NCBI GenBank assembly: GCA_965644295.1
Contig: CBFFRP010000094.1
Location: 107,008 to 171,007 of the forward strand
Direction: 5' to 3'
Source of the DNA: Paraphysomonas bandaiensis
Lineage: Eukaryota > Protista > Chrysophyceae
Length of the DNA: 64,000 nucleotides
This document shows, piece by piece, positions 31,810 to 38,188 of the stretch (the stretch's first letter is position 1; every line of letters begins with the position of its first letter). Below the pieces are notes generated by a model. It ran no database searches. It saw nothing but the letters and a program-made list of their open reading frames with translations, and had not been told where the DNA came from. Both the position numbers and the translations under genes were made by a program.

Positions 31810-32105
31810 TGTCTTGAGTGAGTGTTTGTTTCCTTCCAAATATCAGAAATATGATTCCACACTCAAACAAAAACACACCCAAGCACACTTCAAACAACTC
31901 ACAGCAGAGCGTATCTTGAGTGGTCGCATTTCTTTTTTTGCATCTTTGGTCTGCTCGTGAGTGAAAAATAGCATCTGAATTAGAAAATCGTATCTTGAAA
32001 CGACATGAGCTGGCAGTGATTTGTTTTTTGAAGTGTGGGAAGTCTCATAATTTCAAATACAGAAATTAGCAGTATAGAAATTGACTCTCGTTGATTCAAC
32101 TAAAC

Positions 32106-32528
32106 ATGCCCGCTAAGACTGGAAAATCTGGCCGTGGTACTGCCAAGAAGTCCACCTCATCTTCAGCCAAGGCTGGTCTTCAGTTCCCAGTTGGCCGTAT
32201 TGGCAGATACCTGAAGAAGGGTCGATATGCTCCCAGAGTTGGTGCTGGTGCTCCCGTCTACCTTGCCTCTGTGCTTGAGTACCTCACTGCTGAGATTCTT
32301 GAGCTTGCTGGTAACGCTGCCAGGGACAACAAGAAGACCCGCATCATCCCTCGCCACATTCAGCTGGCTGTTCGCAATGACGAGGAGCTCAACAAGCTTC
32401 TGGGCGGAGTCACCATCTCTCAGGGTGGTGTCCTCCCCAACATCCACAATGTGCTCCTTCCCAAGAAGTCTGCTTCTTCTTCTGCTCCTTCGAAGAAAGC
32501 CAAAGCTTCTGCTTCTCAGGACTACTAA
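32106..32528 (+). CDS. H2A: Histone H2A (SQDY, H2A.X-type)
   Basis: Protein identical to 19940-20362. Confidence 0.98.
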
Positions 32529-32569: not shown

Positions 32570-33845
32570 ACCAATGATGGGACAAACATTTAAGTTTAGA
32601 AAGTTCAGCCATTTAACATTGATTGTTTCCTTCTGTGTCCAGATGTAGAGTATTATAAATGCTTAGTAGATGCATGTCGTAGCGGTTGACTATGAGTTAT
32701 GGCTGACAGATCTCCATACAATCAATTTGCATCGTAGTCGAGGTTGTGTATTGCTGAATTATATATATTAGGAGATAATAACGTTGTGTTGCTGTAGGGT
32801 AATTGTAGCAACACATCAATCACCAATTTTTTTCTCTACAAATCATATCTTTCGCCTGAGCATAGGCCACCAGAATGCAATCTCAGAAGGGTATATTACT
32901 GCTTCCCCTGGTGCCTGACGTGAGGCACAAAAGGCAGTCCCCGATGCAAATTGCACGAAATGTATGTGTAGTCTTAAACGTTCCAGTGTGGAAGTAGTAG
33001 ACTTAGACCACTGCTTTTACTTGTCATGCTGTACGTTGTACAACGTCCATCATATATATGCATCTATCAACATAGAACATAGTGAGAATGGTCGCACCTT
33101 CGTGCTTGCGGCGACGCACAAGCAGTTCTCGTAGAGTTAAAATGGATTGCGCAAGATGTTTTACTTAATATATTATTATTTTATAAATGCAGTATTGTGA
33201 TTGTTTAGTAATGATGTGTGGTGAAATGGTGAAAATTCTCGTAGAGGTAAATAGTACTAGGATTTCAGAGTTCAGAGTTTGCACTAGTGAGTAAATGGTA
33301 GATGCTTACCTAGCTTCTATCTTGACTAGTGTGTTCATCTAGCTCACTCAGAGAATCGCAGAATACAAATTAGCCATGGCGATAAACATCAACAAGCTAC
33401 ACGTTTGTTGTACTTTTGAGTAGGTTGTAGTTAATGACTTAAGTACTACACACTACACATCCATAGATCGCAACAGATGCAGTATCAGTGAATGCCGCAG
33501 CCATAAGGCATAAACAATAAACAGAAGCAATTTCGAGTCATTGAGATATATCAGATATCGATTGAAATAAAATCAAACGACAAATGGGTATGCCTCGTTG
33601 CCAGAGAGAGCAAGCAGAAGCGATATATCTTGGAATGAGAGTGCACTAATGGCTTATTAAGATGGTGAGTGTCATATTGTCATGGCGATTCACCGCGAGC
33701 AAATACCTCTCCATAATTTCAAAGGAATACTAAGATAACGTAATGTGCAAGTAGAAAGTATAGAGATATATAATATATATAACACCAGTTTCCGACTAAT
33801 GCGACGGAACACTGCCAGGACTAGCCGATTTCGAGCCACTGACAG

Positions 33846-35329
33846 CTAAGGAGTTTCTTCAGTAATATGGCCGGCAGCTATTAAACTCTGTACATATTCT
33901 TTCCATTGCGCAGGTGGAGTGACGTGTCTCATCAATGATCGGTGCTCGTACACTGAACCATATTTTCCAAAGTTAACGGCATGATCAGGGGACAGATGGG
34001 CAGTTGGCTTGTACTCAAACTTACTGGCGCCCTGTAGGGTGGCGATACGGTTATACATGAAGTAAGAGAACTCCCAGCTGCTGAACTGAAGGAAAGAGAA
34101 AAGAGCATTTGTATAAGGCCACACTGACGCCATTCTCCAACGTTGAGCAATTCCAATACTCTCTTTGTCAAGGTTCTCAACCATATGCCAATTCCATGGT
34201 GGATTCAATAGCATGTCCCCCTACAAAAACAGACTTAGAACAACAGAATCAATAGAGTTGTTAAACTTACCGGCTCGAGAGTGTACTCATACTTCGGTGC
34301 ATAACGATAGAGAGGAAAGTGCTCGTCGATGATGGCGTCGGAGTTGTTTCCGTGCATCACCATCCAAGTCAAGAAGCTCTTACTGTCTTTGAAAAGACCA
34401 TTCATCATAGGATACATTAGGAAAGAGTTCGAAGGATCCACAAACGTCCACTTTTTCCGACCATGTATCATCATGAAAAGATTGTTGTAGTTGGCACAAT
34501 GGTACAGAGCGCCAGTTGTATCGAACACACTCATAAACATCTGAGAAAAGAGGTAGTTTCGAGGCATACTAGCACGAGACGTAGCAGGGATGCCACTCAT
34601 ATGTTCACTGAACCTCCACAGTTCTAACTCGTCCTCCAAAAACGGTTTCTTCTCAAAAATATTGGCGTTATTGTCAAGATAGCAAGGATGTTCAGGGTCG
34701 GATCGGCTCTGCACATATTCAGCGAGAGTCCAGTGACGAACTGTCCCATCCATACAACGTGTGGATGTATTGAAGTCACCTACCCGATCGGCTAAATTGT
34801 CAGGAGTCCAAGACATCGCAGGAATATCCAATACAGATTTTAGAATCACAGGGCGACCCATTTTAACGTAGTTGTTAAAAAAGGTAGGGCCATCTATCTC
34901 ATCCATCCGAAAATTAGGGATTTCATAGACATTATCAGCACCCTTGGGCACTCCTCTTCTCTCGAAGTCTTCAATAATATCTTTATGAATAGATGCAAGT
35001 AAATCCTCGAAGAGAAAGTTGTCTCTCATCCAGTAGCGCATGCAGTAAATGCCTTTGAGTTTCAGAGAGGTCATGTATCCAAGAGGGACATAGTCCGATA
35101 TCGGGACAGCGCTCAACGGCTCGTGTAGCAGGAGACCGAACCCATACAAGCCGTGTATTCCTTGAATCAGCTGAACACCAGCCATTGCAAGGAGAGATGG
35201 TATATGAAACCCATAGAGTTGGAGTGCAATTGCAAGCAATGCAACACCAACAGTGAGCTTCATAATGAACCCAGTAAAGATGCCCCGCTTCGTCGAGTTC
35301 ATTGACTTCGCACCACCTGACTTACACAT
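33846..35329 (-). CDS. JmjC/cupin_8 Fe(II)/2-oxoglutarate oxygenase-fold protein with N-terminal signal-anchor; HxA...H iron site
   Basis: FFNNYVKMGRPVILK, YHCANYNNLFMMIHGRKKWTFVDP, TLEP|GDMLLNPPWNWHMVEN; intron 34221-34270. Confidence 0.85.
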
Positions 35330-35553
35330 ACTCAACGGGCTTATAAGTCCCTTCGGAGGGTTGCCAACTGCACTTCTATTTAATGTGACTCTGATGGAAT
35401 CGCCTTATGGCACCCAAGAACACATACGACGATTGTCAGATCCGTCTCCACACAACTGTATAGATGAACACCCGAACTGACCATTGAAAACACAAAAAAA
35501 CAACGTGGAGAAATTCAACGTGGAGGACACACACCAACATATATGTACATACG

Positions 35554-36055
35554 TACATACATACATACATACATACATACATACATACATACATACATAC
35601 ATACATACATACATACATACATACATACATACATACATACATACATACATACATACATACATACATACATACATACATACATACATACATACATACATAC
35701 ATACATACATACATACATACATACATACATACATACATACATACATACATACATACATACATACATACATACATACATACATACATACATACATACATAC
35801 ATACATACATACATACATACATACATACATACATACATACATACATACATACATACATACATACATACATACATACATACATACATACATACATACATAC
35901 ATACATACATACATACATACATACATACATACATACATACATACATACATACATACATACATACATACATACATACATACATACATACATACATACATAC
36001 ATACATACATACATACATACATACATACATACATACATACATACATACATACATA
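35554..36055. repeat. (CATA)n = (TATG)n microsatellite, ~125 units, in a divergent promoter
   Basis: Pure array between start codons 35329(-) and ~36093(+). Confidence 0.97.
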
Positions 36056-36092
36056 GCGTGTGTTGTGGATGTTGTTTTACAGTACGGATGGG

Positions 36093-38188
36093 ATGGGTAT
36101 GATATCTGTAGCTGTGAGATGTTTGTTGGCATGTACAGCTTTTTTTCTAGTTATTGCTTCTCAGTGTGACTCATGTGGAGAGTTGTGCCCTGATTTTGTG
36201 TACTCAGGAGCAGCAGAGTCAGGGCTGTTTGTTAATCATAGTCTAGTCTCTCTGGCAGCTCTACCCCATCAGCACGACCATGAGATCTCCCCCCGGTGTA
36301 GGTCCAAGCTCTTGCGTGAGTATAGAGATATAGATGTGTACCGAACCCGCAGTCGCTGCTCGTTTGCACCGCTGGATCGGCTCTGTGTTCTCGGTCGGGA
36401 GCATATCAAGCCGGAGGATACTGACACACACACCGAACCAGTCTTCTTCGTGATGCTGAGCGGAGATCCTTTAATTGCTCTTAAGTCAGCTGACAAGATA
36501 CTTAACAGCCAAGAAGTTAAGAGTGGCTTGTTACTGGCGCGGTTTATTTTTCACATCGATTCCTCGACTGATAGTAGTGAAGTGTGGAATAATGTAGCGG
36601 ATTGGGCCTCGAATCCAACGTATGGTCGATCAGTCCATGTTATCGATCGTGACCTGGCTACAGATGTGGAATGGTGTGACATTTCTATCGTCGAGGCACA
36701 GTTGTTTGGTATGAAAAAGGCACTAAATACGTGGTCTAATATGACATCGTTTGTGACAATCTCTGATTCTCACTATCTTGTCGCCCCTGTAAGTAATCTA
36801 TTAAACTTTTTTAGACGCCACAAGAGTGAGAATTTTGCTGGAAGTCATTCCCTGACTAGAGGAAGCGATGTTTTTTGGAAGTACATCCTCAACGACATAA
36901 CTTTTATGTGTGATCGGCAAGTGGTGCATGTTGGATGGCGAGATGACCCATTCAGTAATGCCAATGAGTTATATCACACAACCAACCTCTATAGCTTCTG
37001 GTCTGTTGAGTTTGTAAGATATGCAGTGAACTCTAGTGTCGGTCTTGGTGCAGTGCAGTCCTTATTAGACAGACTTAAATACACTACCAACAGCGACGAA
37101 ATATTCTGGGGCACCCTCTTTTTCAATTCTCCATTCTGCCACACGGCTGCACACTTGGATCGGTCTATTGGGGAGGAAGTCACAGCTCTTACGTGGAATA
37201 GCCACTGCAGGACTGCCGATACGAATGTCTTTGCTCCTGACTGCACGCACATGCACATGCAGCCGCTGTCGTGGTGGTATGGACAGAGCCCAAAGTGGGT
37301 GGTGCCATCTGAAGCTCCGCTACTTATCACTCGCCAACCGCTATTTGCTCGTAAAGTGAGTAGCAATAAGAGTGGACTTGAGTTTATTAATACAATTGAA
37401 AAGTGGCAGTTGGATTTTGAAGAGAGAGACCGCATTAATAATGCCAGTAAAGCGTTTCCTTTTCTCCTTTCTTCTGGAAAAGGAAAGAAGAGGCAGTGTC
37501 TTCAGATTGTGGAGCAGCTTCAAGATAGTATTGGTGTTGGATGGAAATGGGTTCATTGTAGTAAAAGGAGGAGCGGGGAACTCGCTGACACAGATACTGC
37601 ACCTACAGAGTTTTATTTACGAGACTGCGTGGGCCCAGTGCTGAACGGTAGCCACACTATTGGCGACGACTTATGTGCAGCTGGGTCTGACAATGAAGGG
37701 TTGCCATTTTACAGCAGTATACTTCCTGGTGGATATCTTTTCGGGCACTGCAAAATCTCATCCATGTCATCTAAAAAAGCTACTGATAATATGTGCCTGT
37801 CGCCATTCCTCCTGTCCATGTCCAGCGGAATCGCAGAGGGCTCCCTTCGGTATGAAGATATATATAGTAGGAGAAAGAAAGATGAAATGATTGGATTTAT
37901 CCCATGTCAAAACATTGGCTCAGTTGGTGCTGTTGAACAACTGTTTGCCTTTCATCGTGAACGAGGTCTTATCGAAGTTGCGTCAAAACATACCGTAGCA
38001 CTAGAATTAGGTAACATTCTACATCTACGCGAGCTATGACTAACACTTTCGTAGGTGGGGTTGGGGCCGGTGTAGCAAGTGCTCCTCAATATTGCCTTAA
38101 GAGGTCTGGAGATGTGGTGTCATTGGAAGACTGCCACAATATTTCCTCTAAGTATGGATTAAAGTTAATAAAATCGGGTTCATGGTGA
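36093..38188 (+). CDS. GT14 (core-2/I-branching, xylosyltransferase-like) glycosyltransferase with a Cys-rich C-terminal region
   Basis: Signal-anchor; FVTISDSHYLV, YTTNSDEIFWGTLFFNSPFCHT and PLFARK motifs; intron 38011-38054; stop 38186-38188. Confidence 0.7.

Follow-up and report, generated by a model that had tools for sequence, protein, structure and literature searches.

The window analysed here is a 64,000-nucleotide stretch of the genome of the chrysophyte Paraphysomonas bandaiensis (assembly GCA_965644295.1, contig CBFFRP010000094.1, positions 107,008 to 171,007 of the forward strand). It carries a two-exon gene on the minus strand encoding a 477-residue protein, and the spliced product matches the public protein P0177 exactly. 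P0177 combines an N-terminal membrane anchor with a Cupin_8/JmjC domain that retains the two iron-binding His residues and the 2-oxoglutarate (2OG) pocket of Fe(II)/2OG oxygenases but has Ala in place of the acidic iron ligand. Its closest studied relative is a bacterial chlorinating enzyme, and P0177 is thus a good candidate for a rare eukaryotic enzyme that chlorinates unactivated carbon. The gene and the parts of its product, in window coordinates, are the following.

About 35446 to 33636, minus strand: mRNA, with its 5' end at or beyond 35446 and a poly(A) site at about 33636.
34271 to 35329, minus strand: exon 1 coding sequence, residues 1-353, with the ATG at 35329; 100% identity with P0177 residues 1-353.
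34221 to 34270, minus strand: intron of 50 nucleotides, GTAAGT...TAG (GT..AG), phase 0.
33846 to 34220, minus strand: exon 2 coding sequence, residues 354-477 (124 codons), plus the stop codon at 33848..33846.
35225 to 35281, minus strand: N-terminal transmembrane anchor, residues 17-35, following a K/R-rich segment; Kyte-Doolittle hydropathy 2.11; modelled as a helix spanning 16-37.
35129 to 35206, minus strand: second, weaker hydrophobic helix, residues 42-67, with the conserved sequence TGxHGFYGLGLL (consensus of the closest-homologue alignment A1 described below); modelled as helices 42-58 and 60-67.
34137 to 34879 (intron included), minus strand: Cupin_8/JmjC catalytic domain (Pfam PF13621), a double-stranded β-helix, approximately residues 151-381.
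34679 to 34681, minus strand: Y217, predicted ligand of the 2OG C5-carboxylate; aligned to a Tyr of JMJD5 and kept in 115 of 127 relatives (alignment A2, below).
34493 to 34501, minus strand: H277-C278-A279, the proximal iron His and the Ala at the facial-triad Asp/Glu position; the plus strand reads ggcacaatg, with CAT TGT GCC as its reverse complement.
34481 to 34483, minus strand: N283, aligned to an Asn of JMJD5 and kept in 126 of 127 relatives.
34454 to 34456, minus strand: K292, the 2OG C5-carboxylate Lys, 15 residues past the proximal His; kept in 125 of 127 relatives.
34185 to 34187, minus strand: H365, the distal iron His in PWNWH, aligned to the distal His of both JMJD5 and OocP; kept in 126 of 127 relatives.

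The gene model is settled because the transcript contig L019 and independent RNA contigs splice out the same 50 nucleotides, while a DNA-like run keeps them. L019 (1789 nucleotides, carrying P0177) aligns to window positions 35446..33608 with 0 mismatches and a single 50-nucleotide gap, the intron. The same segment is spliced out in RNA contigs of three other metatranscriptome studies of marine samples, independent of each other (four studies with L019), and is retained in the DNA-like run X18. At the 3' end, an RNA contig of run X15 stops at 33636 and continues as poly(T) on the plus strand, corresponding to the poly(A) tail. The gene is expressed in culture-derived samples and in environmental samples of natural marine communities. 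The two peptides quoted in the first-pass annotation, GALYHCANYNNLFMMIHGRKKW and PWNWHMVEN, are present in exons 1 and 2, respectively, and the HCA triplet is encoded by CAT TGT GCC on the reverse complement, as had been reported.

The N-terminal region contains two hydrophobic helices, followed by two linker helices, the Cupin_8/JmjC domain and C-terminal helices. Among the 18 closest homologues that were scored, 14 carry an equivalent of the N-terminal hydrophobic segment, and all 14 are among the 15 with an intact N-terminus; ~40% of the full-length family representatives have an N-terminal hydrophobic segment too. The hydropathy of residues 42-67 lies below the Kyte-Doolittle threshold of 1.6, and this helix could be a second transmembrane span or a membrane-associated helix. 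With the first segment alone crossing the membrane, the distribution of charges would put the catalytic domain in the lumen or outside the cell; a hairpin of both helices would leave it in the cytosol. Of the earlier description of P0177 as a membrane-anchored secretory enzyme, the anchor (residues 17-35) stands and the secretory location becomes one of two possible topologies. Matches in Pfam are confined to the Cupin_8 and JmjC models: PF13621 is hit by exon 1 with E=7e-12 and, in the full-length protein P0001 (92% identical to the window protein over exon 1), by residues 150-380 with E=4e-20. NCBIfam holds no model for the family. The AlphaFold2 (AF2) model has a mean predicted local distance difference test score (pLDDT) of 86.6, and its double-stranded β-helix superposes on those of OocP, JMJD5, JMJD7, TYW5 and FIH.

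Alignment of a hidden Markov model (HMM) to crystallised JMJD5 places H277 on the proximal His and A279 on the Asp of its HQD motif, with N283, K292, Y217 and H365 on their counterparts; the FIH alignment falls in the same register, so that the His, Asn, 2OG Lys and distal His are kept as first proposed. We take N283 to be the equivalent of FIH N205. K292 aligns with the Lys of the JMJD5 GRK and OocP GVKRW segments, and A279 with the Gly of the OocP HQG. P0177 departs from the HxD/E...H signature of canonical JmjC hydroxylases and demethylases by having Ala at the acid position. To describe the site across the family, two alignments were used: A1 holds the 19 closest (36-92% identity) of 27 homologues found in a word-index search, and A2 is a broader family alignment of 127 diverse relatives. 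In A2, H277 is kept in 126/127, C278 in 108/127 and A279 in 115/127, with Gly (4), Ser (3) or Glu (3) at the position of A279 in further sequences. Among the 127 relatives, His conservation reaches 60% in just two columns, those of H277 and H365; the β-helix has no third such His, and a 3-His cupin iron centre was rejected on this ground. Of the acids in the core, only D355, the Asp of the structural GD motif, is strongly conserved. It is not a replacement ligand, since canonical JmjC enzymes carry the GD Asp alongside the HxD Asp.

The Ala is a property of the family. A279 is invariant in 19/19 of the closest homologues. An exhaustive profile search over cluster representatives returned 1634 matches at E<=1e-3; tightening the threshold to 1e-10 leaves 560, and to 1e-30 leaves 146. 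Among the best 158 relatives covering the site, 143 read HxA, 4 HxG, 3 HxS, 4 HxE, 1 HxT and 1 HxV, and 2 lack both His residues; N283, K292 and H365 are almost invariant in the same set. A FastTree phylogeny built from 147 sequences, with two canonical HxD paralogues from this genome as the root, shows HxA across the whole ingroup. The HxE, HxG and HxS members fall inside HxA clades, which suggests that HxA is the family's ancestral state; support at deep nodes of this tree is weak, and the placement of several long branches is unsure. The two proteins that have lost both iron His residues (P0018 and P0030, reading N..N and R..Y) are nested in the orthologue clade and are probably pseudoenzymes that arose from an ancestor with HxA.

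What defines the family is a 2-His iron site in which HxA or HxG replaces HxD/E, combined with an intact 2OG pocket. Its orthologue clade includes a member from another chrysophyte, Dinobryon, and a further representative comes from the choanoflagellate Salpingoeca. Searches of the ESM Atlas by language model and by structure add diatom, giant-virus (Nucleocytoviricota) and Bacteroidota relatives; several giant-virus Cupin_8 clusters are among the nearest ESM Atlas neighbours by features and shape. A stramenopile expansion of FIH-like proteins, some of them fused to a sulfotransferase, was described by Iyer et al. 2010 (PMC2938197). Equating the present family with those sulfotransferase-fused proteins was rejected, as the ten longest representatives contain no domain besides Cupin_8/JmjC.

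Within the 62.5-Mb Paraphysomonas assembly a second copy of the gene lies on contig C371 (170506-171988, L001) and is 99% identical to P0001, an MMETSP1103 transcript of taxon 36769 (Paraphysomonas). At the nucleotide level the two copies are 79.7% identical and at the protein level 92%, and the C371 paralogue has an intron of 52 nucleotides at the same position. Outside the coding sequence the two loci show no similarity; the copies are therefore old dispersed duplicates and not alleles, and an allelic or homeologous origin of the C371 copy was rejected on the same grounds. Between them the proportion of nonsynonymous differences (pN) is 0.05 and that of synonymous differences (pS) is 0.80, at which synonymous sites are saturated, giving a pN/pS of 0.06 overall and 0.02 over codons 125-400, which cover the catalytic domain. 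With the Ala held in the closest homologues and in most of the best relatives, and with this constraint on the catalytic domain, the residue is clade-conserved under purifying selection, as the first-pass annotation had envisaged; the orthologues carry HxA and not the HxD that would have marked the Ala as private to this protein. HxA loci in the genome lie on contigs C94, C371, C430, C431, C348, C167, C381, C150 and C34, and at least 7 distinct HxA genes are present among a total of 43 Cupin_8 matches. The same subfamily also includes two HxE paralogues, reading H-S-E and H-C-E (C450:23720-24385, L011, and C357:111722-112120, L013), which amount to natural 'revertant' controls inside one genome. 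Canonical HxD paralogues occur on C432 (HKD) and C352 (HID, JMJD6-like).

The closest solved structure, by profile and by fold, is PDB 8A82 chain A, deposited as 'Fe(II)/aKG-dependent halogenase OocPQ'. The orthologue profile built from A1 matches OocP (8a82_A) with E=2.1e-28, against 6e-12 for the next match, JMJD5; the family profile built from A2 gives 9.5e-57 (196 bits) for OocP and 2.3e-31 (113 bits) for JMJD5. Structure comparison agrees: VIA-align superposes the model on OocP with Z 27.2 and a root mean square deviation of 3.2 Å over 319 residues (model residues 78-415), versus Z 22.9 over 225 residues for JMJD5, and 8a82_A is the top rank in Foldseek. Pairwise identity between OocP and P0177 is ~24%. 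The triad position of OocP reads H-Q-G, with the Lys and distal His kept, and on profile, fold and site P0177 falls into the OocP-like branch of JmjC/Cupin_8 proteins, which has the 2-His site. OocP is a trans-acting Fe(II)/2OG halogenase of the oocydin trans-acyltransferase polyketide synthase (PKS) and forms a heterodimer with OocQ (PMC11260071).

A radical halogenase is the best reading of P0177 because its closest characterised relative is an Fe/2OG halogenase on the same scaffold, and we put its probability at roughly 0.55. A 2His-1Ala/Gly site is common to every Fe/2OG radical halogenase characterised so far, and exchange of the Gly for Asp or Glu in BtnX yields a hydroxylase (PMC13489965). 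By analogy, H277 and H365 of P0177 would bind Fe(II), and 2OG would bind bidentately, held by Y217, N283 and K292. A halide, probably chloride, or bromide, drawn from sea water, would fill the site vacated at A279. Activation of O2 would then generate a halo-ferryl species, an unactivated sp3 carbon would lose a hydrogen to it, and the halogen would rebound onto the carbon radical.

Several points weigh against halogenation. The 2-His site is necessary and not sufficient for it: the FIH Asp-to-Gly variant (D201G) is said to hydroxylate still, without halogenating, so the motif alone is no proof. OocP is the sole characterised family member and is not eukaryotic, and the gene contexts of the bacterial relatives are heterogeneous. 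To our knowledge there is no organohalogen on record for Paraphysomonas. The conserved H428...D432 motif, in a C-terminal loop of modest model confidence, could supply another iron ligand. OocP, moreover, works with its partner OocQ on a PKS-bound intermediate (PMC11260071); neither an OocQ-like partner nor a PKS context is evident for P0177, though no search aimed at a partner was made.

The strongest alternative, appreciably less probable than halogenation yet a serious possibility, is that P0177 is an active 2-His Fe(II)/2OG oxygenase in which water or substrate occupies the vacated site and which hydroxylates, desaturates or otherwise oxidises its substrate. The intact and constrained Fe and 2OG residues fit any oxidative outcome, and the FIH Asp-to-Gly variant, reportedly still a hydroxylase, has the same fold. 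The BtnX mutants indicate that second-sphere residues and substrate positioning set the choice between halogenation and hydroxylation, but no characterised natural 2His-1Ala/Gly Fe/2OG enzyme is a dedicated hydroxylase (PMC13489965), and the one characterised member of this family, OocP, halogenates. The reversion of a few lineages within the family to HxE suggests, furthermore, that the choice between Ala and Glu is functionally meaningful.

A second alternative has the facial triad completed from elsewhere, either by H428 or D432 folding back over the site or by a carboxylate or sulfate of the substrate, with ordinary oxygenase chemistry as the result. The element concerned is the following.

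33984 to 34004, minus strand: C-terminal motif T426-A-H428-L-S-P-D432, conserved; its loop has a mean pLDDT of 62 and lies between confident helices.

In P0177 the motif reads FEYKPTAHLSPD, and a family motif of the form hydrophobic-E/D-x-x-[S/T/A]-H-[D/S/G] recurs in many members, including the orthologue clade, a Crocosphaera protein and three HxG proteins. The motif could act as a lid or in the second sphere, or it could provide a relocated third ligand. Its spread in the family, the 88% acidic D432 column among the 127 relatives and the moderate confidence of the loop would accommodate a relocated ligand. However, many short-tailed members without the motif still keep HxA and the HxG members have it, which argues that in general the 2-His site does not depend on the C-terminal motif, although P0177 itself could be an exception. 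The β-helix core offers no conserved His or acid that could stand in for the missing ligand. The model's C-terminal helices also superpose on those of FIH, which form a dimer interface away from the iron, a weak pointer in the same direction. We regard completion of the triad from elsewhere as unlikely.

That P0177 is a catalytically dead protein whose fold is kept for binding only is very improbable. The canonical acidic ligand is missing, and the same clade does contain truly degenerate relatives (P0018 and P0030), but both His residues and the Tyr, Asn and Lys are kept at 91-99% in the 127 relatives, and the catalytic domain is highly constrained in a gene expressed in several natural communities. 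The first-pass annotation had argued against a dead oxygenase, and the conservation of the Ala under selection with the other Fe and 2OG residues intact upholds that view. A private mutation, assembly error or misalignment of the motif is refuted, with next to no probability left to it, since independent transcript contigs carry the same sequence, the paralogue and the great majority of the best relatives have HxA, and invariant flanking residues (Asn, Gly, Lys and Trp) anchor the register.

The neighbours of the gene in the window are a glycosyltransferase gene and a histone gene. The former is an intronless open reading frame (ORF) at 36060..38039 on the plus strand, encoding a 659-residue GT14-type membrane protein (Core-2/I-branching, 'Branch' domain E=7e-7) with a hydrophobic N-terminus, and is transcribed divergently from the halogenase-like gene. 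Most of the gap between the mRNA 5' end and this ORF is filled by a (TACA)n microsatellite (35546-36055, 510 bp, 127.5 copies, 99% match). On the other side lies a histone H2A ORF (32091..32528, plus strand), recognised by eye from AGLQFPVGR... in its translation. The GT14 and H2A genes are not PKS genes, and neither they nor the (TACA)n array are shared with the C371 locus.

A pattern-based scan of bacterial genomes found two loci with family genes. In a metagenome-assembled genome (MAG) of a deltaproteobacterium (L010:1485-11338) an HxA member lies among two sulfotransferases, a P450, a PhyH-family oxygenase and short-chain dehydrogenases/reductases, accompanied by epimerase-like, enoyl-CoA-hydratase-like and membrane fatty-acid-hydroxylase-like genes, a set that possibly serves a sulfated, oxidised lipid pathway. 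In a Crocosphaera MAG the family gene adjoins a glycosyltransferase, a hexapeptide acyltransferase and a P450. Two further bacterial contexts, beside an SRPBCC protein and beside a DUF3419 protein, are uninformative or only weakly lipid-related. Because the enzyme is membrane-tethered and bacterial relatives lie near small-molecule or lipid-tailoring genes, a protein substrate seems slightly less likely than a small molecule or lipid associated with the membrane.

One specific substrate class to consider is the chlorosulfolipids, for which we know of no identified chlorinating enzyme; the literature searched yielded no paper naming a halogenase for them. These lipids, first described in 1969, were discovered in chrysophytes (Ochromonas, Poterioochromonas); their sulfated chains bear as many as 11 chlorines, all at unactivated carbons (PMC13413282). 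They also occur in coastal sea water, at levels that correlate with diatom and dinoflagellate counts (PMC13413282). The P0177 gene and its HxA paralogues might conceivably encode membrane-bound chlorosulfolipid chlorinases that act on several unactivated positions, with different paralogues serving different positions. The chrysophyte host, the membrane tether, the multigene family, the bacterial relative near two sulfotransferases and the diatom relatives speak for this speculative proposal. Nothing links P0177 to any substrate, however, and Paraphysomonas is not a known producer, and for these reasons we hold the proposal unlikely.

Enzymes that chlorinate unactivated carbon are rare and valued biocatalysts, almost all of them bacterial. 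The present analysis places OocP, so far an isolated JmjC-type halogenase, in a large family with the same 2-His site. This family is expressed in the sea, and it extends to chrysophytes, diatoms, choanoflagellates, giant viruses, cyanobacteria and other bacteria. If its members halogenate, they would constitute a major unrecognised source of marine organohalogens and would provide gene candidates for chlorosulfolipid biosynthesis. If they do not, they would be the first natural group of 2-His Fe/2OG oxygenases with another function, and HxA/G would be weakened as a marker of halogenases. The radical-halogenase atlas of Kipouros and Chang (Nature 2026, PMC13489965) uses two His plus Ala/Gly with no nearby acid as its criterion and contains several unexplored eukaryotic clusters; its main text is without JmjC, OocP, diatoms or chrysophytes. 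The OocP-like family may already be included among the radical halogenases predicted there.

Relative to known systems, P0177 shares with JMJD5/KDM8, JMJD7, TYW5 and FIH the fold, the positions of both His residues and the 2OG Tyr, Asn and Lys, but those enzymes have HxD and hydroxylate protein or tRNA, whereas P0177 has Ala. The FIH variants D201G and D201A (PDB 3d8c, 2ilm) likewise present two protein iron ligands on a JmjC fold and differ in being artificial; both entries are among the structure matches, and the D201A chain outranks wild-type FIH against the A2 family profile. SyrB2, CmaB, CurA-Hal, WelO5, BesD, AdaV and the plant DAH belong to other branches of the 2OG oxygenases (PhyH-like and others), not to JmjC/Cupin_8. 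With these P0177 has in common the 2His-1Ala/Gly arrangement, and in them a halide site and halo-ferryl C-H halogenation go with it (PMC13489965). DAH is an existing eukaryotic Fe/2OG radical halogenase and is unrelated to P0177 in sequence.

The nearest system remains OocP of Serratia, which shares the Cupin_8/JmjC fold with its N-terminal helical extension and first C-terminal helices, as well as a 2-His iron site in which a small residue replaces the acid, with the 2OG Lys and Asn in the same register. OocP has HxG and is soluble, without a membrane anchor, whereas P0177 has HxA and is anchored; OocP acts with OocQ on a PKS-tethered chain and is encoded in a bacterial gene cluster, whereas the P0177 gene is isolated, intron-bearing and eukaryotic. 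A radical halogenase on a JmjC/Cupin_8 scaffold is already known in OocP (8A82, released in 2023) and is not new in kind. This precedent makes the halogenase reading of P0177 likelier but weakens the claim of a new kind of enzyme: of the earlier proposal of a eukaryotic halogenase on a JmjC scaffold, the function gains a closest characterised relative that carries it out, and the novelty in kind is lost, both to OocP and, for eukaryotes, to DAH. What is new is the eukaryotic, membrane-anchored variant in a large unstudied family of algae, giant viruses and bacteria.

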